A stretch of 64,000 nucleotides of DNA from Paragordius varius (lineage: Eukaryota > Animalia > Nematomorpha), in contig OZ176052.1 in assembly GCA_964247055.1 (NCBI GenBank), positions 3,658,001-3,722,000 of the forward strand. Direction: 5' to 3'. A model generated the notes under the pieces. That model did not search any database. It had not been told where the DNA came from and worked only from the letters and a program-made list of their open reading frames with translations. Below, piece by piece: positions 4,974 to 61,640 of this stretch. Position numbers and translations under genes: made by a program. Every line of letters begins with the position of its first letter. Position 1 is the first letter of the stretch.

Positions 4974-5005
<32 letters not shown>

Positions 5006-14509: not shown

Positions 14510-17500
14510 TCATTTAACATTTTTATTGTAATTTAGACTATTTAAATAATAACTGGTCCCAATCAATAAATGCAATTTTTCCCAAAATAAATCTTCACAC
14601 CAATGTAAACACGGGTGTCTGATAAAAATATCAGCCAATTCCGAATATGTAGAAACACAAGTTATGTTTTTGAGTGTGCTACTATTATAATTAAAATTTC
14701 CAAAATTATTTTTATAATCATTATCTCTACTGACAATATTATTATTGTATAAGGAATATGTTTGTCGTTTTCTATTTGCCAAATTTAAAGGAGAATTTGA
14801 AATAGATGATGATTTAATTGGGGACCATATGATTATAATAACGCGATTAGCAGAATTAAAGAGGGATTTCGGCACGCATTTATCTTGTGCCCATGTGATT
14901 GCAAATAAATCTAATATCTGGATATTAGATTTATACAAATAAAATCAAAAATGTTAAATTGTGAATAATAATTTTATATATGGTAAAAAAATAAAAATAA
15001 TTACCTCTTTAATATCCTGACGAGGAATATCAATTTGGTTGGGAAATTCAGGGCAGTTTTTTCCAGCTAATTGGTTTAGTTCAACCCAAGAATCTGCAGA
15101 GATTACAAATAAAATTTTTCGACTGCCTCTAACATCTTCCATAATAATTTCACTCAAAAACATATCTCGGCTATAAGAATTGCATATATGAAGTGGATTT
15201 GATCTGATGCCTATGTATTGTAAAATGTAAAAAAATTGGGATTGGATTCATATTAATAACTAATGATTAATTATATAGCTTGTAAAACTAATAATCTTTT
15301 AAACTTTAAAATGGTCTAATGTAATATGCCACAATATATTAATTAGAATAAATTAAAACAAATCTTGGTACGAAACTATGAGTATGATTTCTCTTGATTA
15401 GACAACTCTATATAGATTTATATAGATCAAACTGCTAAAGGAAACATGCTTGTTAAGTTTTCGTCAAAAAGATATTTAATAACTTATTTTTATTTGATTC
15501 TTTACCGTCTGCTTTTTTAACCAAAGTCAACACTATTTTAAATTTTAACCATTTATATTTACAAACCACGAATTTGGTCGCCCGTGAGAAAACTTATAAA
15601 TATAGACCATCATCATCTTTCGAATTCATGGTGTATAAGTTGAAGCTTTTTTACTTTTACATGCCCTTGAAAACTATGCGATATAGATGTTCAGAATATC
15701 TTAAACTGGGCTGCTCTTTCAGCAAAGGTACCCAGCTTACTCTAAGGGAACGCGCAGTGGAAAAATCATATAATTCATTTTATATTCAGGTAATTATAAT
15801 ACTATTTTACAAAAAATTACAGTCTGGGTAATCAGGCTGTTCGAATAATAAATTTTTAATCATGGGTATATTTTATAAAATCATGAACCGACGCATTTAA
15901 TCAATACCTTTTAAATGTTTATCAGTGTATTTATGCTCAAGCAATCCGCTGGTATTATGGTCAGCAGCTGTTTTGGTTAAGATTGGACACAAAGTTTTGT
16001 GAATGAATGATTGTTGATCTGGACTTCCATCATAACTTACAAACACGTCATAAGTGAACAACGAATACGCCTCTATTATAAATTAAAATCACATGTAAAA
16101 TCGAAAAAGATTTAATTCCTTTTTTATAAAACCCTTTTTACCACTTTGTAAAATAAAATTTTGCTAAGTTAATACCATTCTGGAAAACAGATTATTTCGT
16201 TTAAAATTATATAAAAATATATAAACATCAAAAAAACATATTCCCACAAAAGGTTTTTTGTATTTTTATACTGACCAATAATAGTTCACAAAAAAAGTAG
16301 TGTTTTGATAACAATCATTAAAATTAGATTTTCCAAAAAAAACAATCGATATCGACTTATAACCATTTTGCAAAATAATAGAAATAAACCAGGAAGGGAA
16401 CATATTTTTTTAGAATTAACTTTTTGAAATCTTGGGACCAAAACCATCTTTTTATCCCATAACCGATAACGGAAATATTAAGCACCTTCACATGTGGAAT
16501 CCAAACAGCTGACAAGGTGCTGATTATCGGATGTTTTGAAAAAAGTTTCATTAATTCTATCATCGGCCATTGCACCCTCGATCGAATCATACGTGTTAGA
16601 GTTTGTTGAAGCAGCTGATGAGGAGCCATCTGGTGAATAAACAACATCTGGTAGAGGGCGAGAATGGACATTTATTTGGCCTAATAGAGGATATCTGCCT
16701 TTGAGTAGTTTTTTCATTTCATTTTTATGGGGGGTGGTATTATTAATTTTCTTGCCATTGTTTTTATTTGAATTGGTTTTTTTACGTCGTTTGGAAATCC
16801 AAAAAGCTAAAATGGCAAAAAGGACAAAAACAGCCGCAAAAGCCATACTTGTACCTATTATCACAGGTTTAAATAACCACTGATGCCCATTATTTTGGTT
16901 AAAATTCATAACACTATTATTTGTTGATAAGCTCATATTTATTATATCGAATTCGGTTTCATTAGCAAAAGGTAATGGCACAGTTGTTTTGTCAAGATTT
17001 ATAGTGCCATCAACTGTTTTATTTAGCTCATTTTTAGGAATGTTATTGGCTATTGACGTCAAATTATTTGACTGGAAATATGAAGTTGTTTCATTATTTC
17101 GGATAAATTTTATGTTAGAATCTTTAGAATCAGGTTTAAGTATTGTAGGATCATTGTGAAACAAGTCAATTGAATACCGATCTATATATTCGGCAGAAAT
17201 AGAAGTTATATCATAATTAGTGTTAGTATTGTGACTGTATTTAGTTTGACACATTTTATCAATTGTTTCCGATCCTGCTTTTAATATTTCCCTAATATTT
17301 TTTGAGTTTTGAGCGGGTAAGGGAGAAAATATTTCGTTTTTTAAGTCTATTAAGTTGTATTTTGATATTTTCGATTCTGAATTCAAAGTTATTAGAGTTT
17401 GGGGGAATATTGTTGAATGAAATGCTTGAAGAAGTAAAAAATCCGAAGTTGGTGCTTTTAGTAATAATGATGATTCGTGTTTAGGCACCCTGTAAATGCA

Positions 17501-20500
17501 TGTTAAATCCGAAAACAAATCATTGTTTTTGATATTTAATTTAGAAGTAGATTTTTCGTTTAGTCGAAATAAATATTGCCAAAAACATATATCTGTACAA
17601 TTAAATCGGTTTCCAGCCAAATAAAATTTAAGGGGCTCATCGGTATCAGATGGCATTTTATCTATCATATTTTTTAATATTCTAGCATCTAAATGAGTCA
17701 TTCCATTATAACTGACATCAAAATGTGTGATAGACTGTAGCACATTCGATCTTGTGAAAACAGATGATCGTAATTCAGTTATTTGGTTGAGACTTAAATT
17801 TAACGAATTAATTTGTTCAGTTTTGATAAACATGGAATCCGGAAGTTGAGTCAGCTGATTACAGCTCAAATCTAGGGTTTGAAGTGATATAAGACGTGAT
17901 AGCGCTTTAGGCTCTATAGTAGATATTCCACTACCATTTAAGTACAGATGTTTTAAATAAGACAATGGGAAGAAAGCATAATTGCGTAACCTTATAAGGG
18001 GCCTTTCGTTCCTAATAAAAACATGATTATCATAGTTGGTTGTATTATCGTTTTCATGGATTACAACAGGGTTACTTTTGTTAGATACGTTATCAGAAAT
18101 AGTTGTAGATTTGTTTTTATAATTGTATAAATCGCTACTGTGTTTTTGACTAATGCCATCTATATATAATGCATTTATATCAACACCGTCCCACCAAAGC
18201 TCATTTGTAAATCGAGGCAAATTTTCTGGAACTTTATAAAATTCTGGTGGAATACCTTCCATTGACCAAATAACATTATCCATTTTTTGACTATTTTCTA
18301 AAGTAGATGTCAGATGTTGTGAAAGTGTTGATTTTGACAAGTGTGATGTAAATGTCGTTTCGGATGACTTTAATGTGTTATCATTATTTTGGCTTTCAGC
18401 CGTTGTTATTTTATCTATTTTAATTCCAATATCAGTCGCCTCTTCGACAATATTATGATTTTCGGAATTTTTACTTTTGTTAACTACAGTCTTTTCAGGC
18501 CTCACAACGTGGTTAAAAAATTGTTTTGGCGTAGTTTCTTTTTTCGCGGGAGTACTGTTGGATATTTCTTCGGGATATTGTCCAGAATGTTCTTTTTGTT
18601 TGCTTTCATGACTTTTTTCACTTATATTTTGCCATTCATTCCCCACCAATGAATCATTCGTATTCAAAGGAGGTGGTATGTAACGAGGTCCACACTTTAG
18701 CACAGTATGTGCCCAAAATGCGTCTCGAAAACATATACAACCAGGCGGACAAACATATTTGCAATCACAATAAAAGAAGGTGCAACATTGGCACAATGGG
18801 GCACAATACTCTTCGTAAGGGCATAGAAAGTGAGCACCCGATAAAGGGATTAGCTGTTCACGCTTTACCACACGAAGGTAAGTCTGCCAATCAGCTGTTT
18901 TTCTTTGTTTAGCTCTATCATCCCATATGAGCTCGTCAGATTGCGTGGCGTTTCGTCTGCTCGTAATCATCGTCTGCATTTTAGCACTTTTATCTAAGAA
19001 ACATAAACAATGAATTAGGCATATTTTTTGGCTGTTATAATTTATATTTAATATCAGAGACTATAACAAAACCAAAAATCTATCAAAGTGAGGAGTTTTA
19101 CTCTGGCCGTTATTATAATTATATTTTAATGCAAAAACTTAAACCATTTTTTAGCCATCTTTTAAATATAGTCCGTTATTTTAATCCCACAGTATGCGTT
19201 TTAAATAAAATTAAAAGAAAAAAATTGTTTTTTATTAATACAGTGTAATGGTTAATCTGAGCATAGTGACTATTCGTATTGATGAATATTAATTTAATAT
19301 AATAAATATAAAAGAAAATTATTTAGCTGGAAATCCTAAATGGACAAAAGATGGAGCTTCATGAATTAAATTATCGGTAAAAATAAATATTTAATCATAT
19401 ATATTGTTTGAGTAACGACGAATGTTATAATAAATCGTGGGCATGTCGTGAATAATTAAGAAAAAACTTTTTTTATAAGAAATCCTAATATATTTTAGGG
19501 TATATAACGGGGAATTCCGTAATATACCATTTCATACAATTTAATATTAACACATGTGTTAATGGTTTACTAATGTTTTAAGTAAGAGATATCTTAATAT
19601 TTTCTCTATGCTTATAAATTATCATAGATAAATAGATGGTTAAAAATTGTGCTTCTCCGATAAAATGTTTTTTAAATTTTAGAAACGTTCGTTATTTTTT
19701 TAAATGATAAAAACCGAGAAAATGAGAACCGGTACCGGTTCTAAATCACAGCCTTACGCGTTTCAAATTGTATAATGTATAGTAACTAGGGTTGTGCTGA
19801 CCAAATCATGACCCGGTCAATTGACCGATTCATGACTAGGTCAGTGACTATTTATTTTTTGACCATGGTCATTTAAAAAAACAGCTGTTTTTTTGAAAAA
19901 TTGCTGGTAATTTTTTTTTGAATAGAGATGGTATATTTTATTGTTTGTATTTAAAAAATATAAATTAAATATTTAAAAATGCTTAATTAACAATATATTA
20001 AATGTTAAACATGCAACCTTATAACATTAACATTTAAGCATATCCAGTTATTTCGAAAAACAAAACAATCATGCACTTTGCAAACTATGCAATTATTCCA
20101 TATATGTAAACCAATAAAATAAAAATCATCCTATAATTGGATATTTCAATGATGAAAGAAAGCGTAAAACAAACTCGGTAAAATTTGGTTGAATTACACT
20201 GGACAACAAATTTTTCTGCCATTCGAATTTTTTGAATTTTCTGATATTTAGTATCATTTTAACAGAAAATCTGAAATAAAAATTATAACTCGTTGGAAGA
20301 ATTTTGTATAATTTGATTTTTTTGATTATGCGCCCTCTTTATCAAAATTTTACTAAAAAATATTTTTCTTTCAAAATATACAAGTAATGCCCATTTGTAA
20401 TATATCATTCGAAAGAGTAATAAAAACTCTATAAAATGCATACTAATATGTATTACATCGACACTTAATATTGGACACAAAGAGCGAACGCGCGAAGCGA

Positions 20501-22794
20501 GAACATTTTTTTTAATTATTATATTTTTAAAACTAATGGATGAAAATAGCTCAAACTTTGTTTAGATGGTGATGAATGTCCAAAAAAGACAACACAAGAA
20601 AGTTTTTTTGATTAAAACATTTTTTTATTGCTTTTTTGTCACTCAACACAGCCATTTTTAGGTTTTTTGTTTTTTAAAAACTACCATCTCATCAATATTA
20701 ATTTATTTTCTTTATAATGCTGATAATTTCGAAATTTTAAAGATAAAAACAAAGTTTAAGGTATTTTTGATCTTTTATAGCCATTATGGAATAAATTTAC
20801 AGTTATAACTATGCATTTTAGTATCCACTAGGTAAAATATTTATGATAATAATAATTTTTATTAAAAAAGCAAGCCAAAAGCTTTTTCAAACGTAAATTA
20901 AATACTAATTAATAATTATATTAAAATAATTTATATGATTTTCAAATTAGTTTGTCTGTGAAAATTCTTGTCTTATTTAAGGATTAAAAATTTCGACCAT
21001 TTAAATCCAAATAACTTTTACATCCGATTGATTTAAATGACTTACTACCATTTAAAAGATGCAGTATTTTGCGCTCTTTCGAATGATATAAAATACATGG
21101 CTTCATATCTAAAACTTTTAATTTTCGAAATTTCGAGTTTAATGTTAAATCGGGGCCAAAAATTATCGATAAACTCTAATATAAAAAAATTCTTCCATGC
21201 TAGACCAATTTTCTTTTCAGATATACTAATTATGTACTTAAATGAAACAAATTTTAAATTTACAAGAATGGCAGTTAAAAAAAGTTAAAATTTGTTGTCT
21301 AGTGTTATTCAGTATTAAAATCTATGTATTTGAAGATTCAGAACACAAACGTGTGCAAAATTTATTTGAATACAAAATTCTTGATCAAATTCGATTTTAA
21401 ATATTTGTAAATAATAAATATCAAAAAATGTATAATACTAACTATTAAGAAAAAACATGAAATTATTTTAGTGAAACGCAAATGTAGTTCGAACGTTATT
21501 TTCACAATCCAATATCGCATGATATTTATTTAGGTAAAAAGTGGTCATGACCATGGTCTGACTGGGTCTGACCGGACTTTTTTGAAAAAGCAGTCAAATG
21601 CACAACCCGAATAGTAACCAGGAATCAATTTGGTATACTGTACTCTTTTAATTTTTAAAATCTAAGGTATTTTTTGCATTCATTTAGTAACTATTCATTC
21701 TGAAATCTTATGCACGTATACATTTGCCAAAATCTGAAGTATTAAAAAATAATTTTATTACCAGATGGTTGTTCAACCATAAGTTGATATTCTACGGTAG
21801 TTTTGGAGGCATCTAAGCAGTGAACCTCCTGTTCATCCAAAAGCTTTAACTGAATAATTACAGACATGTTTGGATCATCAACGGTTTTATTTCCCGTATT
21901 TATCGAATAATGAAACTTTGTACGCTGAAACCAATGGCCCCAATCATTTTCACAATCACAAATGATTGGATTTCCGCGAAAATAAATCCCCGCCATTAAT
22001 GACAGCTGATTCATTTTACGGGAATTATCATGGGACTGAACTATTTTATGCGGCGACTGAGCAAAATTAATGTATCGTACATTACTACTGCTACTAGTAT
22101 CAATATGATTAGGTATACGTTTAATATTATTGTATGAAAAATCAATCCAAAAATGGATTGAACGATTTAAATTATCAGTATAATGTTTTTGTGTTTGGTT
22201 AACAAAGGCATCAGAGTCAATCGTCTGCAACAGCTGATTATTGGTAGTTAAGAAAGTTTTAAGAAGTATATCTAAATGATCCAATGTATGGATTGCATTA
22301 TGGCTTAGATTTAGACCTAACCGGGGTTTAATGTTCCGAAACTTATCATATGTTTTAGTGATATTATGCCAATCATATGGTATTGTGATTGAATCAGCTA
22401 TTTTATTATGATCAACAGATAATGTAGATTGACTATATTGAGTCAAATTGTGATAGTATGTTTTGATATAGTTTATGGTGTTATTTTTGCTAAATTCACT
22501 AAAATTATTTGAGGACTGAAAATTAATTTCGATGTTTTTTAACGTTTCTATCGACCTGTGGGATAAATCTATCATTGTTGGTTTTATTCGTAGGTTAATA
22601 TTATGATAATCTGCTTTTGTCAAATCCTAGGATAGGATCATTCTCCAAAGTTGTAAAATGAATGATATTTATAATTTATCATATTTTCTTTTCATTACAT
22701 TACGAAGCAATTGAGTTTTCGAGAAGGTAAAAGTTGAGCAATTAATTCCAATTTAAGTTTTTTTTCAAGCAAACAACAAATAAAACATTGTGGT
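14510..22794 (-). CDS. Toll-like receptor, multiple-cysteine-cluster (protostome Toll) type: LRRs, Cys cluster, LRRs, TM, TIR; 5' end unresolved
   Basis: Exons 22794-22704, 22626-21762, 18993-16486, 16072-15908, 15210-15005 and 14917-14510, all GT-AG and phase-consistent. Degenerate LRRs and a GNPIICDC cap, then the CPYEEYCAPLCQCCTFFYCDCKYVCPPGCIC cluster (~18690-18826). A second LRR block (LKHLYLNGSGI, LQTLDLSCNQL) ends in a GNRFNC cap. TM segment VIIGTSMAFAAVFVLFAILAFWI is followed by KRRKK. TIR motifs YDVFVSY, SRKILFVIS and LHW..LFWEKL are present. Confidence 0.88.
19787..21610. mobile_element. Non-autonomous hAT element in a TLR intron, carrying a nested MITE
   Basis: Ends TAGGGTTGTGC ... 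GCACAACCCGA, with a perfect 8-bp TSD ATAGTAAC (19779-19786 and 21611-21618). Clustered TGACC/GGTCA subterminal motifs occur at both ends. Confidence 0.85.
20197..21304. mobile_element. ~1.1-kb Tc1/mariner-type non-autonomous element (family B), nested in the hAT
   Basis: TIRs CACTGGACAACAAATTT / AAATTTGTTGTCTAGTG, with TA on the left and TT on the right. A second copy lies in the opposite orientation at 42226-43288. Confidence 0.8.
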
Positions 22795-25526
22795 CTATAA
22801 ACCGTAAAAAATAGTTATTATATTCTAATAATCAATATTGACGTGCATTTTAAAAAATTTATAAATCATACATATACTGTTAAAATTTTCTAATCTATCC
22901 TCTTGTATGAAATCAATTAAAAACCTAATATAAAATGACATAATAAGAAAATTAAATAAAAATGATTAAATCAATATTATATCTGTATTTCCATTTTTTA
23001 AAAAAATATTACATACTTATCGGATTTTCACAAAAATAAAAACACATAAAAAAATTCAAAAATTATAAATTAATATAAAAAATTTCACACTTACCTCAAA
23101 GTAATTTATTAGAATTTGAATTTTTTAAATTTTTTGTTAATTACAAAATAATTTAAAAATAATTTTTATTAAAAAAATAAATGATAAATTTTATACTAAA
23201 AGGATGATTATTAGAGATATTTGTATTTGTTATTATTTTTTGTTTGTATTTCTGATTTTTATAAAATAAATAAATAAAAAGCCAGCCAGCCTTTTATCTG
23301 TTTTTTTCATGATTTGAAAGTCCATTTGGTTTTTTTATATATGTAGTTAGTCTGTGAAAAGGAGAATAAAATATTTTATTAATTTTTTTTTACAAAATAA
23401 TACGTTTTTATAATTATAATAAAATATTTAATGTTAATAATTCATCTTATAATTAATGTTTTTAATAATTTTTTTTGTAAAAAAATTAATAAAATGTACA
23501 AAATATTTGGAATAAAACCAAACGGTTAGTAAATTTTAAAAAAATTAAAATATATTTACATAAAAGATAATGTATAAAAATATGCGGATGAACTCTTAAA
23601 GATGATTTCACATATGAAATTTTTAATTGTGTATTTACATTAGAAAATTTATGATTCATTTGATATTACTATTTCTATTTTTAATTGTTATATATTTACT
23701 CATTTTTTTAATAATTAAAAATATCATTTATAAAAATAAATGTTTATCCCAATTAAAATAAATATAGGTGAAATAGTATTAAACAGCTTTAATTTGTGTG
23801 ATTTTTAGTTTTATGTATATTAATTTGTCATGATTTTTGATTTCCGACAATTTGTATAGTATAGGTTTTTTTATATCTAAATCCATTTTCTATACCATAT
23901 TTTAGACCAGATTTAATCGACTTTTAATGTATATTAATCTTATAAAGCGAAATAATATTTAAAATTTGGGAAGGATAATAAAATATATTTTGTAAAAAAA
24001 CGTTTAAAAATATTTTATTAATTGGAATATGTTGTTAAAAGTGCGCTAGGATTAGAACCATTATAGTAAATAGTTTATTTGGAACCAAAAAACGATCTAA
24101 AATGGGTTCAGGAACCAAACGGTTCCAATTTATTTCCCTATTTCGATTTTTAATACAGTATTTAGTTTGTTTTTTATTTTTAGATTTTGTAGCAAAAAAA
24201 GTAGCACATAATTTGTTGTTATTAATATACTTTACATAATCATATTTAAGAATAATTATGGATATGAAGATATATATATATAACCCAAATTAGAGCCGTG
24301 CCGGAAATAAAAATGCCTATATTCCAATTCCTTATACGAAAATGCTTTTAGCTTACACCACTCTGTTTCAATTCGATTTAATCAACTTTGATTAAAACAA
24401 ATCACACATGCTAAAACGGAATTATCATGTTATTTCTGGCATATATTGTTAAAATAACTATATTGACATTACCTTAAAAACCCTTTTTTATCAAAGTTAC
24501 GGTTGAACTTTTCGGATATTTTTTTTATTCAAGAGGTAAGCAAAAAAACATACTTGTGGAAAATTAGGTTGCAGCGTGCGAATATGTTTGAATACGCTTC
24601 ATGACCTTTTCACATTTTTTCTGCAATGGGTAGTTTTATATCCAAGAAGTCAATATTGTAAATAAAATTTGTTTAGATTTAGTTACCAAACATTGTTCTC
24701 AGATAGAAAAGTTGTTATTTTTTTAGAGTTTTGTATCTAGAGTCTAAAATCGGAACATTTTTGAAGGATTCAACTAAACAGCCGATTTTAAAATCCATAA
24801 ATATGAAGCAAGTTTTTGCCATTAAATTCAACCAGAAAACTTATTAAAGTTAATTATTTATATTTTCTAACCATAATATGTTTTTATTTGCCTATTGTAT
24901 TACCGATTTTAAAAAATTTAAAGAAAAAAATGGCGGCGAAAAAGTTTGAGATGAGGATTTTTTTACAATTTAACATTTGAAAAAAAATGTGTATTATGCG
25001 CCTAAAAGACTAGAGAAAGCATATTTTTGATTTTGGCCACCTAAATATTTAAGTTCAAATTTCAATCGCTCTGAAAACTAAAGGTATTGATGTGTTAAAC
25101 ATTATATGAATATTTTTAGTTGATACAAAGTATTTTCTTGTGGGATTTTACTCTCCATGTGTCAAGCAAAACATTAACTTTACTCTTATTTTTTTTACTT
25201 TATGAAAATGCTCTATTAAAGAGTGCCTTGCCTTAAAAAAGCTGGAAATGGATTTATTTATTATAATGTTTGATATAATAAAATGCTAAAACAGTTGTTT
25301 TTCGATTCTCCAGATTGATTCATAGTTACAAGCCCGGTCGTCACCAGGTTACAAAACTAGGTAACAAAAGCTCGGAATGGTATAAGATCATTGGAATCCA
25401 AAGTATCGGAAAAAAATTGTCTTTAAAAATAAATATTTATAAAGTTTTAACCAGAACAGAAGATAATTAATTCCAAATTTATAAACAGCTTGCCGTTGAA
25501 AACCACCTTAGTCATGATCAAACATA

Positions 25527-28221: not shown

Positions 28222-29764
28222 TTATCCAATTTTAGCCTTGGAAAAATCCATTTCAGGATGTTGAGCCATAAATTTTTTGAGCATGTCCATCTTTTTGGCC
28301 TCCTCTGAAGTGGGTAAACCTAGTTCTTTCTGTTTTTGATCATACATCATTTTTTCAACCATACCCCGGGTCTCACCATCTAAATCGGATAGTTTGGAAT
28401 TTTCAGGCACAACTTTTTTCGTATCAATTTCAATGGGATCATTGGTTAGGAGTTTGGACCACCATTCCATTTTATTAACTTTCTCCAGGGTTAACTGTAT
28501 AAGAATAAAGTCAAAATGAAAAATATGAGAAGCGTATAAATAAAATTTGATGTTTTGCTGTTTGTCCACATAATTGATAGGTAAATGTACGAAAAAAAAT
28601 TCTTTAATGTATCACTTTACAATTTCCACAAAATAAAAATCAAAAATATTTGATATGTATATAAAAATAGATAATAAATATCATGGAGCTGTTTATTTCC
28701 TTATACAAGTCGATTTTATGCATTTTCCCTCCTTTAACAATTAATTTATCTTAGAAACATTGTATAGATCCGAAAATGACAGGCATAGTCTTGTATAATA
28801 TTTTCAAGTTAAAAATTAAAATATTTTTGATCAAAAAAATATTAAATTATACATTAATGGTATTTCCATCCGTTAGGAGCCAGGTAGATTCTTCAATCTT
28901 TACCAAATGTTGCAGTTTGCCATTTATGATTGGAGTCGTTATACCTTTTATACTGACTGTCAAGTTATCACGCGTTATGTCAACCTTAATGTCCTTACTC
29001 TTTAACTTAATAGATTTATCGGGGAGGAAATCACCCAGGGGTATTTTAATCTCAAGCTCAGCCAAAGTTTGACACCATTTATGGGTTGGTAAATCAGCCC
29101 CGTTCCCACTATTTGGTTTGACTTTTCCTGAAAAAATAGAAAATAAGGATATATGAAATGATAATTATATAAATTTAATATTGATTGCAGAAGGGTAAAT
29201 TTGTAATTATATTAATAGATTATATATATCGAGACCTAATGGGATTTAAAAAATTTCTATCCTTAATTATTAACAGAAAATTTTTTATTTATATATATAC
29301 CTTCATCAATTTTATCTATATCATCGTCTGAATCGTTCTTTTTTTCTATTGCGTCCCCATTTGCAACAATGTTGCTTTTAACGGCATTACTCTCCTCAAA
29401 TTTTTGTTTTTTGACTTGGATTTCTTTTTCAAGTTTTTGCGCTTCCTCGTCAGTAAGTTCCTAAAAATAAGAAAATTGATACTTTAATTTTTGGTTCATT
29501 TTGTGGGATTATTTTTTTATGAGATTCTTTTTTCAATTGTTTTGATGCCGCAATAGATTTGTATTTTTCAAAGTACTCAAGGACTAACTGTTTTGGTTTT
29601 TCTGCAGATTCCTTATTATTATCGACAAAACACATGGAATAAAAATCCGTTTTCCGTTGCAGAAAGCTGAAAAATATATCTAAAAGTCCTTGAACACCAT
29701 TTTCTTGCTCTTGAGCAACATGTAAAAGAAGAGTATCAAATTTTTCTAAGTCCGAATTTTCCAT
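28222..29764 (-). CDS. NUDC: Nuclear migration protein NudC (Hsp90 co-chaperone, CS domain), 329 aa
   Basis: Exons 29764-29483, 29460-29301, 29127-28853 and 28494-28222 (990 nt). Motifs [65 protein letters not shown] and [14 protein letters not shown] are diagnostic of NudC. Confidence 0.95.
29461..29482 (-). other. 22-nt GT-AG intron (NudC intron 1)
   Basis: GTATCAATTTTCTTATTTTTAG. Removing it fuses EPKIK to ELTDEEA, restoring the conserved NudC motif. Retaining it causes a frameshift and a stop at 29452-29450. Confidence 0.8.
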
Positions 29765-29953
29765 GTTAAATTAATTTTTCAAAAGTAAAACCTTACAATA
29801 AAAGCTTTTAACAGTTGTGGTAATTTAGAAAGCACATGGCTTCACAATTTGATTTGAACAAACCCGCAAAAAGCGTTTATAAACAGATTAAAAAGGTTTT
29901 TTTGTAAAATATTTTGAAGAATAACAAATTAAAAAATAAAAAAGAAATTTAAG
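29765..29953. promoter_or_regulatory. Putative bidirectional promoter shared by NudC and RIOX1
   Basis: Only 189 bp separate the two divergent ATGs (29764 on -, 29954 on +). Confidence 0.7.
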
Positions 29954-32900
29954 ATGACTGAAGTTTCCAAAAATAATCATCATAATGGCCAAATCTTATC
30001 GATTGAATCAAATGATAAGAGTAACAAGCTAAATAAAGTATTTTATTATCAATAGCTAGCCCTATCTATATTCAAATATTAACGATAGCATATTATGGAG
30101 TAATAATGCCTTTGAATGGTTGATTAATCCAATAACCAAAAATGAATTTTCCAAGTTTTTATTATTATAAAACGTAATGTAGAAAGTATTGGGAAAAACA
30201 GGCCCTATATATTCAACGGGATCACAATGGCTATTATTCTCATTTATTTTCATTTAACAAATTTGACCAGATCATTACTGAGGTTTGTTATTTAATTTAT
30301 GTTATGTTATAGCATTATCTTTATTACAACGAAAATATCGACGTAACTTCCTACAAAGATGGTGTTAAAGAATTGCATAATCCTAATGGCAAAGTTTTTT
30401 CCCCGGTTTTATGGGAATATTTCAATGTAAGATTTTTTTTCTATTTAAATCATATTTACAAAATATAATCCTGTAATAAATTGTCCTTATTAATTGTTCC
30501 GGGTGTACCAAGATTTATCTTTAACGAAACATAACTACAGGCGAGTTTTTTGATTACTGGTTTTTTTATGATATATTCCCTTAACCTTATTATATTATTT
30601 ATAAATTTTATATCAAATGTTGTTAAGTGTTTAATGTTACGGTGGTAGTAAAAAATTAGCGGAATGGATTTTACCTGATATGGTTATTTCATCCCACTCA
30701 TGCTTGCGTATGAGTTTAATTTTCTAATTAGACAAAATTTTAATAATTTCTATCAGTCGTGTCATGCGAGTATTTGAACCCTATTTGTGCCCATATTACC
30801 CAGTAAAAATTGAATTTTTAAATATTTTTTTTAAAAAGCCAACCATATTTTTTAAGATTTAATTTTTCAATATAACATAGCGTTAAGGAATAGATAAATT
30901 AATAAAACACTATAAATATTTTACATATTTAATCATAAATTTTTTGCACAAAAACTTTAGGTTTAACAAAGTATACCACTTTTTATAAAAAATAATCTTT
31001 CTTTCAATTTTTTGTTTTGTATAAAACATTGTCAGATGCATATTTGTCTCAGAGTTTTTTTGGAAATTGACCCACTCCAAATATTTTTACTTTCTTTTTC
31101 TGAGCACAAAATAAACTTTTAAACGTATATATAAATACAACAAACGTATTTAGGAGGGATGTTCTGTGCGTTTTTTGAATCCTGCCAAATTTAGTCGTGC
31201 TGTATGGTCCCTTAATGCGGGATTACAGGAATATTTTTCATCATTCGTTGGTTGTAATATGTATCTCACGCCGGCTTATAGCCAAGGCTTTGCCCCTCAC
31301 TACGATGATATTGATGCCTTTGTCCTTCAAATTGAAGGCTCGAAACATTGGAAAGTATATGCCCCTTTCAATAATGGTAATTCTTTTTAACACTTTATTA
31401 CCTTTTTATTTGTTCGTTCGATTACATTTTGATATATCTTTGTACCCCAAAGAGCTTTATTTATAAACTACTGTTTTAAAGGTTATTTTGGTTAAAATGA
31501 AATTAACAAATATTGTTATCCTGTATTTGATAAAAAGGCTTATATTTTTTGCAGTTTTCTCACTGAGTAAGTTCGAAATTGGGCTATTATAAAAACTAGA
31601 TTGAGTGGTACAGCTGAATTCATAATTATTAATCAGAATTTTTGCTAAAATGTATCGAAAAGCTTTTTCAAGTTAATTATTTACCTATATTAACTGTATA
31701 TTCATATATTTGCCTATTGTATTCAATTTAAATTAAAAAAAATTGCAGCCAAAGGGTTTGAAGAGAGTTTTTTTAAATTTTGTTCAAAAAAAAATTATTA
31801 ATCATGCACCAAACGTCTAAAGAATGAATATATTTCCAATATAAAAGCTTTTGAAAATTTTCGAACTTTAAATACCGTGGGCACAAAATAGCTTTAAAAG
31901 ATAATGAAGTGTTAAAGTGATTATGGTTTTTAACTTTTACGTGCTTAATTGACCTGAGTTTTGGTTCATAATAAATGGTTATCCGTTGATTTTTAATATT
32001 TATGCATAAAATTTAAAAATTTAAGGAAATCGATTTTAAGGTTCGTTAATATTGGATACCAGCATATTTTATATAAGATAAAGTCATTTAGTTTTAATAA
32101 ATCTATTTTTACTGTTTTTCTTTCACTTCAATGAATCAAATTTAAATTATATATTTTATTGATGAATTTTGTAAAAGCATCGCCAAAACCGCACGTCCTT
32201 TTTTTCCCCATGCCCAATCACAGTAAAAATTAAATTATACGGGAAAATCATAAAAATATAAAGACAAATTCTTTAAAAAGACAACCAACCATGCTATTTT
32301 AAACCTTAATTCTATAAAAATTATTAATTTATAATAAATGGAATTATATACCTATTTAATTGTCATACCAATATATATTCTATTTCATACTTTACAGTTT
32401 TACACAATGTTTTAGTTATATTTAAAAAATCAAGATGCAAATTTATAATTTTACTTGTCCGTATAGTTCCAATTTTACTATATTCCTTTTTTTCTGACTT
32501 TTATTGTGTGTTAAATTCTGCGGAAATTATTCTAACAAGATTTTGTAAATTATATGTATATACGGTGTTATTTTATTAATTGAATAAAAAATATCATGTT
32601 TCCATATACAATAAATATATTAATAATATTTTTTAATGACTATAGCAAAATAGTTTTTTTATAAGCGCTATTTTATTTTCAAATATTACCTAATATAATC
32701 TCGATTATTATTATTATACATGGATGGTGAATAGATTTAACCTTGCCCCTAAAATCAAGCGTGGATTTTAACGAAACATCCACATTTACCCCTGAATATT
32801 GGCGAAATCCAATCCTTGAGGTGTGTTTGAAACCTGGTGATTTGCTTTATATGCCACGCGGGTTCGTTCATCAAGCTTCTACCATACCACCCAATGAAAA

Positions 32901-35900
32901 TGGTTAAAGAAAATTTATTTTTAAATTAATTTTAATTAAGATTGCTTTTTATATAATGATTATAGAATACTTTAGCGAATCTATTAATATAGTTATAACT
33001 TGAAAATATTCTCCTTAAGCTGTTTATTTTCAAAAATGTAGCTGAATTGAAGGTTTTTATTTTTGTTTTTCAATTGTTTCTACTTTCCGCATCTTCACTC
33101 TTTAGTTTGGACTCAGTAAGGTCGTCGTATATGGAACTGAAATAGCTTTTGAATAGCTTCCCAGGTTTATCTTGTGGTCTACTATAGATGTGACCAGCCC
33201 ATCTTAGTCTTTTGGCATTTAGAAAGGGGTTTAGAGCAGTGATTTTAAGGATTTTTAGAAATCGAATTGATTACAAAAGGAGATATTTTAAGATTATGAA
33301 CAAATAGAATTGTTAGTATTTTGGATTTAAAGTTTTGGAATTTACAAAGATAAATTTTGTCATAGACCAGTATATCGTGGCATAGGTCAGCGCAGCACGG
33401 ATAATTATAGAATATAACTGCGATTTCATTTCAAGTATGATAAATCTATTATTAATTATGTGTTAGGTTATGGTATATTATTATGCCTTCAGGTGACGTT
33501 TTTTGAGGCTATCATTAATACCGCCTTTAGCGGGCATTTTATCGCCTAATTATATTAAGTGAGTTACCGTTTCGTAATTGAAATTATTGGGGATTGCAAG
33601 ATTAGGTTCTGGTAGTGGTAACTTATCAATGCAGTTTGAGCAAGTGGACTTATCTACCTTAAGTTAATATAGGTTTGCGCATTTTTTATGTTGCCGGAAA
33701 TTACATTTAGTGTACAATATAGAGTTTGCCTTCACAGCTAGCTTGCAAATGCTACATGGGTACTTAATGGGGTTTTTTATATTATCATGCATTAATTTTG
33801 TTTTGCTTGGATTAATTTGAGATAACTTTCCAATCAATTTTTCCATTGATCAGATTGATTATAGGAGGTCGTCTTCCGGTGAATTCACTCATAACAAGAT
33901 TATCTGCAAAGAGCAGTTCCAAGTTGGACCCCTACGTATATCCATTGTAATTTCATCATTTATTATAATAAACAGTGGGGAACCTTGGTGTAGCCCTCAA
34001 GGTACGCTTATTGTTTCCGAAAGATTAAACAAGGTCTTAATTCGGGCTTTGGAGTCGGTGTTTAACAACGTTATTATGCTTTTTATCATCCATTCTTAGA
34101 TTAGCTTTTAATTTGATTTTTGCAATCTGGCAAAAGCACAATCGATGCGATTTTTATACTTTGTCAGCTGCCAGCGGTTCTTCTCTGAAATTTATCCCTG
34201 TATTACCCCTTCTTTGACGTAGTAAAGGCGTTTGACTTTATCCCAAGATCGATGATAACATGAACCATAAGAAGAAAAAGGATTTTCAAAAGCATAATAC
34301 TGTTATATTCCGACTTTAAAGCCCAAATTAAGATATTCTATATGGTCTTTCTGAAACAATCAGTATACAATCAGGGCAACATCAAGATTCTTTTAAAAAT
34401 TTGGACTGATTATTTAAAAGTGAAGTGGTTATCACAGTTACGGTCTGGAAAATATATTTTAAATTTTGTGTTAAATAATTTTTTAGCCATCCTTATGAAT
34501 AAAAATAATTTTGCTGATTATACTTATTGTGTTTAGATTCGGCATCGCATTCACTTCATTTAACCTTATCAGTGTGCCAATCATCAACATGGGGTCAAAC
34601 CATTGAAAAAGGATTTTTACATGCACTTCGAACACTTATGCATACGGATGTCGAATTTAGAAAATCTTTACCACCCGGTCATCTGAACTACATGGGACAA
34701 ATGTTTGAGGGCAAAGATGCAGTATTAGGTATGAATTATTTAGGTTGAAGTTTTGAAAAGTTTTTTATTGAACAAACTTTAAATAATAATTTAATGTTGT
34801 AGACAAATGTGGTTTTTGAGAATATATGTGTTTGTCGCTATATTTTTAATTGTACAAAGATTTTTTTCTTCCGGTGTGGACAAACAAAATATTACACATA
34901 TTAATATATTCAGGTTTATTTTCTGTTTAATATTGAATCTCGAATATTGGGCTAACTATAAAAAAATTATGTGTTTTATCTTTTTCAATCTTAATTTATT
35001 GGAATATACGCTTGTCAAATACGTTAATGGCGTAACCGTTTCGCTTTATAAACATTTTTATAATGAAGTTTATTTGGTGGTATTTACGAATTGGTGTTAC
35101 GTATTGGCCTTAAAAAATATTTTATTTCGTAACACGTTTTTATCCTATATGGATTTTTTAATTTCCTTAGCAATTATTTATAAATAAATGACTTTTTGCG
35201 TAAATTATATTTGTTTTATTGGTCAATGCCTGTGCGCTTTTATAGCATTTATAAATCTTCTAGGTGAATTGTTGGTTTAAGATAATTGCATTTACTCAAA
35301 ATGTTTATACTTAAAATCTTTCTTGACATATAGCTAATTAATGGTTATAAAGATAGAAAAAATTTTTTTATATTGATCTATTTACCATTTTAATTTTTAT
35401 ACATTATCATATAATTACATATTTTATTTTTATACACTATCATACAAATACATATTTCATGTAAATTAATTTTTGTAAATTCCTTAACATATACTCTTAT
35501 ACAAATAAAACAGGTGTTGACTATGAAAATAAACGGAAACAATTTAAAACAACCATCTCGACACTTGTGAATCGCGTTTTTGAAACAATGTCTCCAGACA
35601 CTGCGGTTGAATCTATGACTTTATCACGTTATATTCCAGAAAGTTTACCACCATACCTTGCGACAAAACAAGAAAAGCTATCCACAATCCATAGTTTTCA
35701 TCAGTCAACTGATGTTAGTTCAAAAGGTAATTTATTTGTTTTGCACACTAATTTTGTTTATATAACTTAAAATAATGACAAAATTCCTCCTATGAATGAT
35801 GATATAACTTAAATCTTTAAATATTAACTGCATATTTATATTGTGCTTTTAGCGATAGTAGTTGAATATAAAAATCATAAATGATCTCATGGTATGATAC

Positions 35901-38958: not shown

Positions 38959-41900
38959 TAGTGTCTATTCATAAGTTTTTACGGGTTTTATATTAAAAAC
39001 ACTAGTAATTTTGAAAGGGATCAATATTTAATTCAAATATTGTGTGTCGCTTTCATACCATTCCTCTCATCATAAGGTAAAGCATAATTACCGTGCCAGA
39101 AAAACTGATTAACATTTGCGATATATCAATCGTCAAGCCATTTTTCAATGTTTTCAAAATTATTTCAGTGCTACTCTGCGAGGGGCCCTATTGATGCGAG
39201 GTTATATTAAATGGAGCTTGCAGGAGTCAGATGATGCGGAAAAAATTACCGTCGAAGCGATTTAAATGTGTCTCGTTGGTTTGCATGACGGGACGTCGTG
39301 TAGCATAGCAATATTTGTGGCTCATTCCAGTTGTTTTACAAATGCATGGTTTTAATTTGGAATAGCGACAGTGTTTTGCATAAATGCTCTTCTTCCCAAT
39401 TCGATGCTAAATTCGATGTTAAAGCAGGATTTCACAAGTTAGTTTGCAATTAACGATTTGATGTTTACTCCATTTATCATGTTTATTGGTCTTTCCTATT
39501 GCTCTTAGACATCTATTGATTGCTGATACATGTAATGGTGTAAATCTTTATCATCTTTGCAATTTGTAGCGTACAAGAGCGCCAACTTTCTTTCATCTTG
39601 TAAACTAAACGTTTACATTTTTAGAAACGATGTTTCACATGTTTCAATCAATGGAGCATGTTAACCATATGTTTCTACCAAACGAAACTTTCAGCGGTGT
39701 TAATTTCTCTGATGATGCAGGCCGCAAAATTCCTCTTCAGACACAAAATTCGACATAATTACTGAATGATAAAAACTAGACGCTAGTTTTTGGTATATTC
39801 AACTTGTGTGTGTTGTCGTTTATGTCAGATCATTGGGGTTTATAATAAATCGTTCGCGTATTTTTCTTTGACGTCTTTTAGTTAAACCAGTAATAGCTTA
39901 GGAATACAATACGTATATATAACAATGAATTAATCAAATCTGTCTCATTTAAGGCTAATTTGGTAAAATACACCTATATACTAAAATAGGTAACAATAGA
40001 AGTACCACAAACACATCTCAAAATCAAAACTTACCAGTTTATGAAACACACCATTATTTAATGAACAAATTACCCTATCAAGCGTCTTCAATCTTTGATA
40101 TAGCAACGCTCAAGAGTGCCGATATTATTAATAGCAATCTCAATCACAATCATCAGTATAGTAGTAATCTAACCAATAACTTGCAAAATACGTTGGATTC
40201 TTCCCTTTCTTCAGCATTTTCCACGGATTTCACTTCCCCAACAAATAGTAGCGTGAGTTTTGATGAAGTTTCCTACAATAACTTCAACAATAATAATATT
40301 AATAATTCATCGACATACATTAGTAACAATTTGTACCAAAGTGGATTTAGCATTTATGGTTTCCCTCACAATAAACAACGCAAAAGGACACATTATACTC
40401 AAGAACAACTAAACTGTTTGGAGGATTTGTTTCAAAAAAATCATTACCCAAATTCGGAGGAAAAGAAAAAATTATCATACAAAATCGATATTGAAGAGGC
40501 AAAAATACATGTATCATATTAAATAATTTTGATTTTTTGTTTAATTTAAATGTTTCTTGGGAAAATATTTCAATTTTTGGAAGTTATGAACAGATTAGCA
40601 AAAATACATAGTTTTATGGGGTACGCTTAAACCATATTTTATATATAGATTAATATGCTGTTTCGCATTCATTTATAAGTTTTTGTATTTTTAAGTGGTC
40701 AACCATCCTTTAAATAAATTAAGCACTTAGAGAATTTTTTTTGAAAAGACAACCATACTTTTTAAACTTTGAATTATCTTAATAACTATATTCCTTGATT
40801 GGGTGTGTTACCAATTTATATCTATATTCATTATTTTGCCAACCCAAAATAATGAGTTATAAACTTAAAAATCTTATTTGTCTGTTAGTTTATATATTTT
40901 GTCCGTATAATTTCAAAAATTACTGTACTTTAATTTTAGGTATGGTTTCAAAACCGAAGATCTCGCGAAAACAAAAGCAAGAAATTTGGCAATAAGAAAA
41001 TGAAGATGGCAACCAATTCGTTCGAAGGTTTTAATACATTGTTTAATTTGATTTATTTTATGGTATCGTTACGTCAGTACACTACTCACTATAATATGTT
41101 AACATTAAACTGAAACTTAATTAACCAGATTTTCAGTGTCGTGTTAATTAAAATATAGGTTTGACAAGACAAAGTTTTTCAAACAATTCCAAAGAATATA
41201 TTTTCCCTAGATGTTATCAGGTGATTAGTAATTTTTGGATGGCGATATTTAAGTAAACAAAAAAATATTTATTATTTTTACCATATATTAAAATGCTAAA
41301 TTCTATTAAATCATGTCCAAAAAATATTTGTGTTTCAATATCAACTTATCCGCAATAATGTTGGATTGTGACCTAATATTATTTATATAAAAATCACAGG
41401 TTTAAATAGGTAACAATCCAAATTTATTGAATTTACTATTTACATTACATATTTATTAAAAACATGAATTTTTAAGTACAAATTTGGAAAAGCAATCAAA
41501 AAGGCTTCATGGTGTTTTAACAGTTTGGGCACGACCTTTTCACTTTTTTGTCAGCGGTGGTAGTTTTTTATCCCAGTGCCCAATCTTGGAAATAAACTAC
41601 TGTTTTAAAGGTTATTATAGTTAAAATTTAATTATCTAAAAATGTTGTTTTGTATTAGATAAAAAGCTTATATTTTTACAGTTTTATGACTTCTAGAGTT
41701 TAAAATTGTTACCGCTTCAAATAAGACTAAACAGCTGTTATTAAATCGATAAATATCATGTTGCTGGTAAAGTGCAATTTGAAACCTTACTGTTTATCAT
41801 TTTCATTTTCTAACCATAATAAACATTTAATTGCCTATTCCATTTATCAAATCAAAAAAAAGATAAAAAATGGCGGCGAAAACGTTTGAGATAAGATTTT

Positions 41901-46773: not shown

Positions 46774-49700
46774 TTATCGAACTGCATGTATTTTACAAAA
46801 TGGTAATCCATCTTTGGCGAAAAAACTTTGGCCTTCCAATGGTTTATTGCACACCTAATAATATATATAAATATTTCAAATTATTCAAACTTAATTTAAA
46901 TAGTGTATAAAAATTTAAATATTAACACTTTATTACCTTTTGGGGTAATTTTATAAAAATTATTTATGATATTGGGTCAAATCTTAAAATGTGCATACTA
47001 TGGCCTTTTAGTCACATTATACATATATATTTTTTAAACATTTAAAATCTAAAATATCTTCAACACAAACTTTTAGCTCTCATTATTTTTTTAATTTTTT
47101 TATAGTCAAAATGCAAGTAATATATTATAGTTATAAAATACAATTATTGAAATATGCTTATATTATTTGATGATAATTGATGATTATGATTTATATATTG
47201 GCTGTTTGCTTTAAATGGATTTGAGTGCTATCTAAATTTAGATGCTAAAATCTACAAATCTTAAAAAAGTGTAAACCATTTTGCCTAAGATATGAGTTTT
47301 TAAATTTATTTTAGTCCATCTTTAAAAAATTTAATATATTAAAATTTTTAAGCTTTAGGAATTAACCCAATTAAGTATGCCATATAAAAATATTCAAAAG
47401 GTAATAAAGTGTGTCCGATGTATCTTCCTTAACACACATTATAATACCGATATTTTGTTAACTTACGCTGCATTTAAAGCATTCTGAATGGAAAGATTTA
47501 TTTAGAGCTTCTACCCAACGTTGATTAGCTTGAATAGGTCTATGACATCCATCACATTTTATCGTGAATATATTGTTCCAATCTATATAAATAATTTAAA
47601 ATAAAGTTAATCTTATCACCAGCCAGAAAAATATTACAGTTAAATAATTTAATTGTTGAAATTATACCATTTTCGCAGTACGGTTGACCATTTTCCATGT
47701 AAAAGGTTGAATTACCAAATGGCCGGTGACATTTGGCACAACAAAAGCATTCTGGATGCCATGGTTTATCCAAAGCATTTAAGCAATCCTTTTAACAATT
47801 GAATTTTACAATTAATAAAAATTACTGATTAATCGCATAGACGTCAAGAAATATGCAAAGCTTAAAATTTATAACTTGATTTTAATTTCCTGACACTTCT
47901 AATTAGTAGATTAATTCTAATGTTTGGTTAAAAAGGCAAAATAATTTGATTATAATATGAATTAATGATTATATTATTCCTGCCTAATTTTTGGCAAGCC
48001 GATTTTACCAATATATAATTGTATCCGACATTTTAGATGCATCGTGGAGAAATGGTTAAAATATAAAGTATTATAAATAAAAATTATTACTCCTAAAATG
48101 GCTCTACCACACTTTGTGCAACGCGGTGCAAAATATTGTTCATAACATCGTTCACAATATATTTTGCCCTTTTCTTCGACGAAACCCGTAGTCTGAAGCG
48201 GGGCATGGCAAGAAGGATGAGAACATTCAAAATGGTTTGGGCACCAAGCTTTGTTGAGCGCGCTGATGTATGGACCTCTGTATTATTTAAAATTATAATG
48301 AAACACAACACAATATGGATAATTTAAAATATTATAATAAGTTTTAGAGGTAAAGAAAAAATTCTTTGTGGTTAAAATTACAGCTTGGCCGATACAAAAG
48401 ATTTGTTTAAACATTCAAATTTTCATCTTTTCATGATATATGATGAAAATTTTACTCCTTATTTATCACAGTAATTTATAGTGTTCAGATTCTGTAAAAT
48501 ACTACAAAGGAAAATATATGCCAATTTCCCATTTTAATACTAATTTTCAAGTAATTATATACGAGTTTGACAAAAATATATAGTTTTAGCCAACTATAAT
48601 CAAAATACAAAAAGTTATTTTCAAAAAAGAAAAAAGTGTTACATAAAATAGTAAATACCGTATAAAATTGTGACATTGTTCACATTGAGGCATTTTTACA
48701 CCAGGCACCAGAGTTTCATTGAAAATTCCATGTCCTAAAATACGTGTATTAAATATTTTTATAATAACTGGTCAATGGCAAATTTTATTTATAATGTACA
48801 ATGATAAAGAAGCATTCAATACGCTATTAGACTAACACAAAGGCACTCAAAACGCGGCCCACGGAAGCGGTTTTAAAAATGCCTTTTTCTGACCTTCAAT
48901 TTTAATCTAATTTTTTGATATATGAAGGGTCTAATAGCCATCCAATATTTGTTGGTATTGTATAGTGCACAGGCAAAATTAATTTATTTGGCCCTTCAAA
49001 TATTTGGTGAGCACACCACTTGTCTAAAAATTAAACCAAAATTTGTCCTTTTATCATTCAAACGATCATAATCTCAACATCTTTTTGTAATTCATTATTT
49101 TCCAACTATCAGACATCGACACAAAAATAGAAAAGCAAATATAAAAAAGGTTTAAAAAATTAGGTTCTACCAATCAACAAGGAAGGAAAAAAATTATTTA
49201 ATGTATTCGTATGTATATATTTATGACAAACCTCGTCGCATCATAGATTTATTGGCTTCAGCCGTTCCACCCCCAATTCCAGCATTTGCGGCCCCAATAA
49301 TTCCTGGTTGACTTGTTACGGTATCGTAATTTCGGTCAGAAGTAACTTGAATGGGTATTTGAGTCGAGTTATTACCGTATGATCCTTGTGGAAGGTAGTA
49401 ATTTGTTTGTTGAGGAGGTGATAATTGCCTTACCTGCTGTTGTTGATAAGTGTTGGTTTGGTCAATATTGTTGGAAACAGAGGGAACTATTTTAAATATT
49501 TTGATGTTAAAAATGTAATATATCAAGTTTTGCAAACTGATATATGACACCACTTAATTTAAGAGATTAACGTTGTTTAAATTACAATCCAATAACTTAA
49601 AAAATAAAGCATTCAATACTTGAGAACAAAAAGAGAAACACAACATTAAGAATTTTTATAAGGATATTTTGTTAATAATTGTAAATTATACCTGGTGGTC

Positions 49701-60916: not shown

Positions 60917-61640
60917 AAGGCTACATTTTACAGGCAAAAACTTGATATATTTTGATTTTAATATCAGCTGTTCGTTTCAATCTTTTGGAGAGGTGCCAAT
61001 TTTATTTAGAAGTCAAAAAACTGTAAAAAATATAAGCTTGCTAAATTTAAACTAATATAACTTTCAAAACAGTAGTTTATCTATAAAATTTAACTCTGTA
61101 TAACTACCCCAAAATGTAAACTAGGGCAAAAAAGTTAAAAAGTAATGAAGTGTTAAGAAATAGTGGAAAAGGGTCCAAATAAGAAAAATCGGAAATATAT
61201 TTTTTCCTTTTTAAATGGGCTTTTATCGAGGGTGATTGAAGGCCGCTCGGTTATATGTTAATATTTAAGTTCAGGCCACATTTTACTGGCAAAAACTTGA
61301 TATATTTTGACTTTAATATCAGCTGTTCGTTTCAATCGTGTTTTGGAAAGGTCCCAATTTAATTTAGAAGTCAAAAAACTAAGCTTTAAATTTTAATTAA
61401 AATAACTTTCAAAACAGTAGTTTATCTATAAATAGTTCTGAGATATAAAACTACCTCAAAATGTAAACTAGGACAAAAAAGTGAAAAAGGTAATGTAGTG
61501 TTAAGGAATAGAGGAAAAGGGTCCAAAAAAGAAAAATTGGGATAACACAAATATAATCCATTTGAAAATTTATTTTTTCCCTTTTAAATAGGCTTGTAAA
61601 TTTGAGGGTGAGCAAAGTCCGGTCGGTCATATGTTAATAA
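60917..61640 (+). repeat. ~355-bp direct tandem duplication of a TTAA-type element end
   Basis: The unit starting AGGC.ACATTTTAC.GGCAAAAACTTGATATATTTTGA occurs at ~60917 and ~61272. Both units contain CAGCTGTTCGTTTCAATC, AAAACAGTAGTTTATCTATAAA, AGTGTTAAG and GGAAAAGGGTCCAAA. Confidence 0.85.

Follow-up and report, generated by a model that had tools for sequence, protein, structure and literature searches.

Predicted introns of 22–30 nucleotides near the start codons of the head-to-head NudC and RIOX1 genes of the horsehair worm Paragordius varius

The NudC–RIOX1 locus

The stretch of DNA analysed here, called the window below, comprises 64,000 nucleotides (nt) of contig OZ176052.1 of the horsehair worm Paragordius varius (assembly GCA_964247055.1, positions 3,658,001 to 3,722,000 of the forward strand) and has an A+T content of 73%. 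It carries a head-to-head pair of housekeeping genes, NudC on the minus strand and RIOX1 (NO66) on the plus strand, whose start codons lie less than 1 kb apart, the spacing that defines a divergent pair. The 5′ coding parts of the two genes are interrupted by four predicted micro-introns of 22, 22, 28 and 30 nt, one in NudC and three in RIOX1. A previous examination of the same DNA, referred to here as the sequence-only reading, had described them as a symmetric zone of short introns around a bidirectional promoter. Its coordinates and lengths for the four micro-introns and for the 173- and 727-nt introns of the same genes proved exact (Table 1), and its lengths for other long introns were likewise reproduced (1358 and 1634 nt in RIOX1, 217 nt for the first intron of YPEL5 and 3392 nt for the first intron of Zasp).

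Protein searches were run exon by exon, and joined gene models were not used as queries. For the exons of RIOX1, the closest match is the Montseny horsehair worm, Gordionus sp. m RMFG-2023, with a per-exon protein identity of 41–75%; the assembly of that species has a G+C content of 26.9% (Gordionus genome preprint). A search with RIOX1 exon 6 returned only two Logan fragments, both unrelated. In NudC, the exon that follows the micro-intron opens with the conserved motif ELTDEEA and aligns with the human NudC peptide 7ndx_B from residue 7 of the latter. A protein search with the open reading frame (ORF) of NudC exon 1, covering proteins of 57–182 amino acids (aa), gave no match, and comparison of the tail of this exon with PDB and Pfam gave nothing useful.

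The 5′ end of RIOX1 required revision. The gene probably, and with good confidence, possesses an additional first exon at 29836–29895, which would place its start codon 118 nt upstream of that in the earlier model. Among 4207 peptides from the window, the peptide encoded by this exon ranks second in similarity to Gordionus exon 1 by local alignment, and the first RIOX1 exon of other animals is of comparable size (17–21 codons) and carries a motif of the SAFxVFK type. Comparison of the new exon with PDB and Pfam yielded nothing useful. A profile built on the N-terminal motif of metazoan RIOX1 proteins proved to be without power, scoring 1 bit against the Gordionus N-terminus and 4.5 bits against exon 1 of the window gene, and the case for this exon consequently rests on the match between the two hairworms.

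This revision alters the geometry of the locus. The distance between the two start codons, put at 189 bp in the sequence-only reading, shrinks to 71 bp, and this interval is the putative shared promoter region of NudC and RIOX1. The first long introns, which had seemed to start at mirrored distances of 464 nt (NudC) and 473 nt (RIOX1) from their start codons, now start at +464 and +591 nt, respectively, and the apparent symmetry is thus an artefact of the truncated RIOX1 model. Relative to the revised start codon, the three RIOX1 micro-introns begin at +202, +319 and +447 nt, and the NudC micro-intron begins at +282 nt from its own start codon.

Table 1. Predicted features of the NudC–RIOX1 locus (window coordinates)
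Feature	Positions	Strand	Length (nt)	Description	Support
NudC exon 4	28225–28494	−		last coding exon; stop codon at 28222–28224	conserved C-terminus (..MEWWSKLL..)
NudC intron 3	28495–28852	−	358	GT-AG	
NudC exon 3	28853–29127	−		CS domain	Pfam CS, E 6e-13
NudC intron 2	29128–29300	−	173	GT-AG; starts +464 nt from ATG	
NudC exon 2	29301–29460	−		starts ELTDEEA	Pfam NuDC profile positions 11–62 from exon residue 1
NudC micro-intron	29461–29482	−	22	GT-AG, phase 0	read-through leads to a stop after 10 codons
NudC exon 1	29483–29764	−		ATG at 29764	Pfam Nudc_N, with profile position 1 at residue 8
Gap between start codons	29765–29835	.	71		revised RIOX1 start
RIOX1 exon 1 (probable)	29836–29895	+		ATG plus 19 codons, ends ..AKSVYKQIKK; missing from earlier model	resemblance to Gordionus exon 1 (..ARSIYKRISK)
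RIOX1 intron 1	29896–29953	+	58	GT-AG, phase 0	in-phase join of exon 1 to 29954
RIOX1 exon 2	29954–30037	+	84	first exon of earlier model	length equals that of Gordionus exon 3
RIOX1 micro-intron	30038–30059	+	22	GT-AG, phase 0	acceptor backed by orthologue; donor predicted
RIOX1 exon 3	30060–30154	+			exon-wise alignment to homologues
RIOX1 micro-intron	30155–30182	+	28	GT-AG, phase 2 (codon split)	gapless contiguity with homologues
RIOX1 exon 4	30183–30282	+	100	100–105 nt in four other species	
RIOX1 micro-intron	30283–30312	+	30	GT-AG, phase 0; terminal in-frame TAG	Gordionus 48-nt intron at same codon boundary
RIOX1 exon 5	30313–30426	+	114		equal length in Gordionus, Lingula and Ptychodera
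RIOX1 intron 5	30427–31153	+	727	first long intron	Gordionus 9303-nt intron at same position
RIOX1 exon 6	31154–31376	+		JmjC core	phmmer matches to RIOX1/NO66 proteins
RIOX1 intron 6	31377–32734	+	1358	carries interspersed repeat 31384–31915	
RIOX1 exon 7	32735–32902	+			Pfam JmjC_2
RIOX1 intron 7	32903–34536	+	1634	holds minus-strand ORF fragments	

Micro-introns and their orthologues

All four micro-introns are bounded by GT and AG, as are the 58-nt and long introns of the same genes. Retention of any one of them would introduce a stop codon within 5–10 codons, and this includes the 30-nt intron, whose length is a multiple of three but whose final three bases form an in-frame stop (TAG). 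The RIOX1 exons that flank the 28- and 30-nt introns are contiguous to the residue, with no gap, when compared with the proteins of Gordionus, an aphid and one metagenomic protein. The exon that follows the 22-nt RIOX1 intron begins with the residues PYL, as does Gordionus exon 4, which follows a 42-nt intron. Taken together, these observations make it highly probable that the four segments are genuine introns. That they are instead assembly errors, lesions of a pseudogene, or insertions that are translated or recoded is scarcely credible: the GT-AG ends are exact in every case, gapless collinearity is regained once the segments are removed, and the exons carry no other lesions. Moreover, three of the segments lie at intron positions of Gordionus, two of which are also occupied in distant phyla, and an indel error offers no explanation for an in-frame segment of 30 nt that ends in a stop codon.

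Within the micro-introns there are T-rich stretches and A residues located 6–9 nt before the terminal AG, possible counterparts of a polypyrimidine tract and a branch point, but in sequence that is 77–83% A+T and with only four cases. Their donors read GTAT or GTTT, whereas the long introns of the window more often begin with GTAA or GTATA. Full motifs of U12-type introns (an RTATCCTT 5′ splice site and a TCCTTAAC branch site) occur in none of the four. Only the NudC intron begins with GTATC, and a U12-type assignment was considered for it and rejected, since the sequence goes on with AATT and so departs from RTATCCTT. The window contains a canonical U6 small nuclear RNA (snRNA) gene at 4950–5055 on the plus strand, which is full length (Rfam, 114 bits) and has an intact ACAGAGA box and AGC triad; its presence is compatible with splicing by the major spliceosome but proves little. 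About 30 nt upstream of this gene there is a TATA-like stretch rich in A/T.

The sequence-only reading had proposed that intron lengths be compared among orthologues, and this comparison was made for RIOX1. The Gordionus structure was obtained by mapping the RefSeq protein XP_065320687.1 onto its locus (OX940786.2:11211409-11260945), the RIOX1 proteins of the brachiopod Lingula, the cnidarian Dendronephthya and the hemichordate Ptychodera were each mapped onto their own loci, and all introns were placed on a single alignment. In Gordionus, GT-AG introns of 44, 51, 42, 43 and 48 nt fall within the first 768 nt of the gene and are followed by an intron of 9303 nt. The 42-, 43-, 48- and 9303-nt introns coincide in codon position and phase with the 22-, 28-, 30- and 727-nt introns of the window, respectively. 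The short introns that had been reported at the 5′ end of the Paragordius gene are accordingly matched by the same layout in a second genus, and RIOX1 thus has a real 5′ zone of minimal introns, with long introns downstream of it, that is conserved between hairworm genera. A protein search with Gordionus RIOX1 brought up no RIOX1 from any other hairworm, and none of the protein searches yielded a transcript-derived protein of Paragordius.

The alignment columns of the 28-, 30- and 727-nt introns also bear introns in Lingula, Dendronephthya and Ptychodera, where these measure 198–933 nt; the position of the 22-nt RIOX1 intron is shared with Gordionus. Because their positions are common to distant animals, the 28-, 30- and 727-nt introns are ancient. 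At least two of the micro-introns are thus old metazoan introns whose length has fallen to about 45 nt in Gordionus and 22–30 nt in Paragordius, while the next ancient intron in the same gene has grown.

The comparison also bears on the suggestion that gene 5′ ends in this genome may be systematically misannotated. The ease with which such ends are mismodelled is illustrated in both species: the earlier model of the Paragordius gene omits exon 1, and one of the Gordionus models, of 420 aa, omits the entire short-intron zone at the 5′ end. The three public Gordionus RIOX1 protein models disagree with one another (630, 507 and 420 aa), and the 507-aa model lacks 3′ exons.

Intron position, competing explanations and neighbouring features

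Within the window, introns no longer than 30 nt are concentrated near start codons, accounting for 4 of about 9 introns that start within approximately 480 nt of an ATG and for none of the roughly 18 that start farther away (rough Fisher p ~0.007, with introns of the same gene not being independent of one another). This contrast is suggestive rather than firm. In Gordionus RIOX1, the corresponding counts of short introns are 5 of 5 proximal and 0 of 7 distal. When codon usage was scanned along the entire window in search of hidden micro-introns, the signal proved too noisy for use.

Two features that might be attached to this concentration are not supported. The short introns had been linked to the bidirectional promoter, but the 10 kb upstream of RIOX1 in Gordionus contain no other called gene, the last 5 kb hold no notable ORF, and the locus gives no match to NudC. 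The zone is present there in the absence of a divergent partner, and the short introns would thus be independent of the pairing of NudC with RIOX1. Nor is there a sharp limit of distance. The zone extends to +654 nt in Gordionus, where the last short intron (48 nt) starts at +607, whereas the 173-nt intron of NudC already begins at +464, about as far from its start codon as the 30-nt intron of RIOX1 (+447). The boundary between short and long introns tracks the orthologous intron rather than the distance from the start codon.

These observations lead us to favour, as moderately more probable than not, an explanation in which the micro-introns are ordinary U2-type introns held at the minimum length of the species, with a 5′ bias that is a conserved tendency of individual introns and that is maintained by selection together with deletion bias. 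The 5′ coding parts of NudC and RIOX1 would be cut by GT-AG introns of the major spliceosome at the species-specific minimal length, 22–30 nt in Paragordius and 42–51 nt in Gordionus. Their removal would most likely proceed by intron definition, the 5′ splice site being read together with the branch site and 3′ splice site across the intron, using splice signals that may be reduced to GTA or GTT at the start and TAG at the end, and any failure of removal would be exposed by a premature stop within 10 codons. Introns farther downstream would not be held at this minimum; their lengths start at 173 nt and reach several kb, and some of them contain copies of interspersed repeats. The 5′ bias would be a tendency found in some broadly expressed genes, conserved intron by intron between hairworm genera, and neither a rule of distance nor tied to the promoter. 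As its cause, we prefer a combination in which selection removes insertions that land close to promoters of such genes and deletion bias shrinks the remaining introns to the limit set by splicing.

The role assigned to insertions can be followed in one intron. The 1358-nt RIOX1 intron contains an interspersed repeat (31384–31915), further copies of which lie near 24792–25028, 41592–41691 and 60652–61504, with 67–83% identity between copies. Inflation by insertion is shown for this intron and is only plausible for the rest. The view of the sequence-only reading that the short introns do not reflect general genome compaction holds up well, in that introns of 727–3392 nt, some of them repeat-bearing, adjoin them. 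Within the 1634-nt RIOX1 intron are ORF fragments on the minus strand (33313–33846), one of which is Cys-rich with weak Pfam matches to zinc fingers (RING/C1); these fragments look like the remains of retroelements, an identification that is not confirmed.

Several observations weigh against the explanation that we favour. The first intron of YPEL5, starting at +141 nt from the ATG, is 217 nt long, and that of the Zasp-like PDZ-LIM gene, starting at +111 nt, is 3392 nt long. The RIOX1 intron nearest the start codon falls outside the 22–30-nt class: it is very probably 58 nt long, and it contradicts two statements of the sequence-only reading, namely that all promoter-near introns of the pair measure 22–30 nt and that every other intron of the window measures at least 77 nt. 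Checks for repeats and tandem repeats, made on small samples, showed no repeat copies in the 727-nt intron or in the 9.3-kb intron of Gordionus. Finally, the donor of the 22-nt RIOX1 intron is backed by the reading frame alone.

In a rival explanation, introns shorter than about 30 nt with weak signals would be spliced by a separate promoter-proximal mode, available only near the cap and assisted, for example, by the cap-binding complex or the early-elongation polymerase, so that their position would be a requirement of the mechanism. The cap-binding complex is known to promote the binding of U1 to the 5′ splice site closest to the cap. None of the four introns of at most 30 nt starts more than 450 nt from an ATG, their donors are weak compared with the GTAA or GTATA commoner in long introns, and Gordionus RIOX1 has the same 5′ layout. 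The known effect of the cap, however, concerns the first intron, whereas in RIOX1 the 58-nt intron is the closest to the cap and the micro-introns are the second to fourth. The length of the zone also varies between the two hairworms (last short intron at +447 in Paragordius and at +607 in Gordionus), the NudC intron at +464 is long at nearly the same distance as a RIOX1 micro-intron, and the 42–51-nt introns of Gordionus have donors that are just as weak. We consider a separate mode of this kind improbable. A hairworm-specific promoter-proximal regime, with a spliceosome coupled to cap or polymerase that excises introns far below the usual animal limit only in the first several hundred nt of a transcript, and with position in the transcript setting intron length in a large, repeat-rich animal genome, seems to us slightly more improbable again.

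Alternatively, there might be no rule of position at all: micro-introns could be the default minimal class wherever they lie in a gene, and their clustering in NudC and RIOX1 could simply record which ancestral introns had been enlarged before the hairworm genera split. The inheritance of the class of each RIOX1 intron between the two hairworms, the adherence of the boundary to an orthologous intron instead of a distance, and the YPEL5 and Zasp genes as counter-examples in the window would all be expected on these terms. The counts given above speak in the other direction, both those for the window (4 of about 9 near-ATG introns against none of about 18 distal ones) and those for Gordionus RIOX1, and the ordinal-position bias of the short mode published for Gyrodactylus provides a precedent in another animal. 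An origin of this type is unlikely, albeit less so than a dedicated splicing mode, and minimal U2-type introns with a conserved 5′ tendency remain our preferred account.

Other features of the window were noted in passing. The Zasp-like gene has an intron of about 85 nt (47584–47668, minus strand) between two exons encoding LIM domains; introns of less than 100 nt can thus be found far from a 5′ end, yet none of 30 nt or less. The last exon of YPEL5 (7601–7891, minus strand) continues for about 60 Asn-rich codons past what we take to be the end of human YPEL5. An open frame of 860 codons with leucine-rich repeats (16481–19060, minus strand; Pfam LRR_8) has a 294-codon frame (21745–22626) upstream of it on the same strand, and the two may belong to one large receptor-type gene with leucine-rich repeats. 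Two open frames that are richer in G+C (328–612 and 3877–4254, both on the minus strand), one of them encoding a very acidic peptide, have no Pfam match and may be exons of a single gene at the window's left end.

Comparison with known short introns, and significance

Among 51 animal genomes, introns shorter than 30 nt have been reported only in myxobolids and Dicyema, in a study whose text makes no mention of Nematomorpha (Hadjez et al., Mol Biol Evol 2026, PMC13644364). The introns of myxobolid myxozoans and Dicyema japonicum resemble those described here in being GT-AG introns of about 20–30 nt that occupy conserved sites and are flanked by conserved exons; in both cases, positional conservation serves as the validation and conventional U2-dependent splicing is the inferred mechanism (PMC13644364). 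Unlike the hairworm, those animals have compact genomes with a median intron length of 22–27 nt (PMC13644364). In Paragordius, the micro-introns are a minority concentrated at 5′ ends, beside kb-sized introns in an AT-rich genome of low gene density, and they do not form the dominant class, introns of 58–3392 nt being present in the same genes and window.

The 5′-biased class of small introns in parasitic flatworms to which the sequence-only reading had appealed is indeed published for Gyrodactylus salaris, in which a short mode of about 32 bp prevails at ordinal positions 1–2 and longer introns are found further on, with a mean intron length of 659 bp (Hahn et al. 2014, PMC4040987). Neodermatan flatworms, including G. 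salaris and tapeworms, have bimodal intron lengths with a position-biased short mode, and the G. salaris genome, like that of the hairworm, is not fully compact (PMC4040987). Gyrodactylus differs in belonging to another phylum and in having a short mode that lies just above 30 nt, its two modes being 32 and 58 bp (PMC4040987). The contrast in the hairworm is between 22–30 nt and hundreds to thousands of nt. A bias by ordinal position of the kind found in Gyrodactylus is seen in NudC and in the two hairworm RIOX1 genes; it is not followed by YPEL5, Zasp or the 58-nt intron 1 of RIOX1.

Small 5′ introns are also a feature of schistosomes. In ciliates such as Paramecium, which are unicellular, all introns are tiny (20–30 nt), and their retention is policed via premature stop codons. 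The introns described here are of the same size, and every one of the four, including that whose length is a multiple of three, would likewise give a premature stop if retained (n = 4). Drosophila and Caenorhabditis elegans have a peak of minimal introns at about 45–65 nt together with a long tail, and the first intron of a gene is typically its longest. They resemble the hairworm in accommodating two length regimes in one genome, with the short introns thought to be read across the intron, and differ from it in their long first introns, which is the opposite of the hairworm layout.

Literature searches for hairworm genome papers dealing with introns turned up nothing relevant, and no description of micro-introns was found for Nematomorpha. 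The word intron is absent from the Gordionus genome preprint, which reports a BUSCO completeness of only 71.6%. What is new here is the series of lengths at orthologous positions, from hundreds of nt in distant animals through about 45 nt in Gordionus to 22–30 nt in Paragordius, along with the finding that the first long intron keeps its position, the correction of the RIOX1 5′ end and the counter-examples.

Common gene finders and aligners impose minimum intron lengths that are near or above the sizes observed here, and 5′ exons can be lost as a result. Whether the low completeness reported for Nematomorpha is due in part to short introns missed in this way is a question that our analysis raises rather than a result. 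If RNA confirms the predicted introns, horsehair worms would represent the third animal lineage with introns shorter than 30 nt, after myxobolids and dicyemids, and the first case in which such introns exist beside kb-sized, repeat-bearing ones, so that the minimisation of introns would be separated from the compaction of genomes. The comparison with Gordionus, which has 42–51 nt at the same sites, shows that minimal intron length shifted by about 20 nt within Nematomorpha; it offers a means of dating the change, and the two species form a tractable pair for examining what in the spliceosome sets the lower limit.

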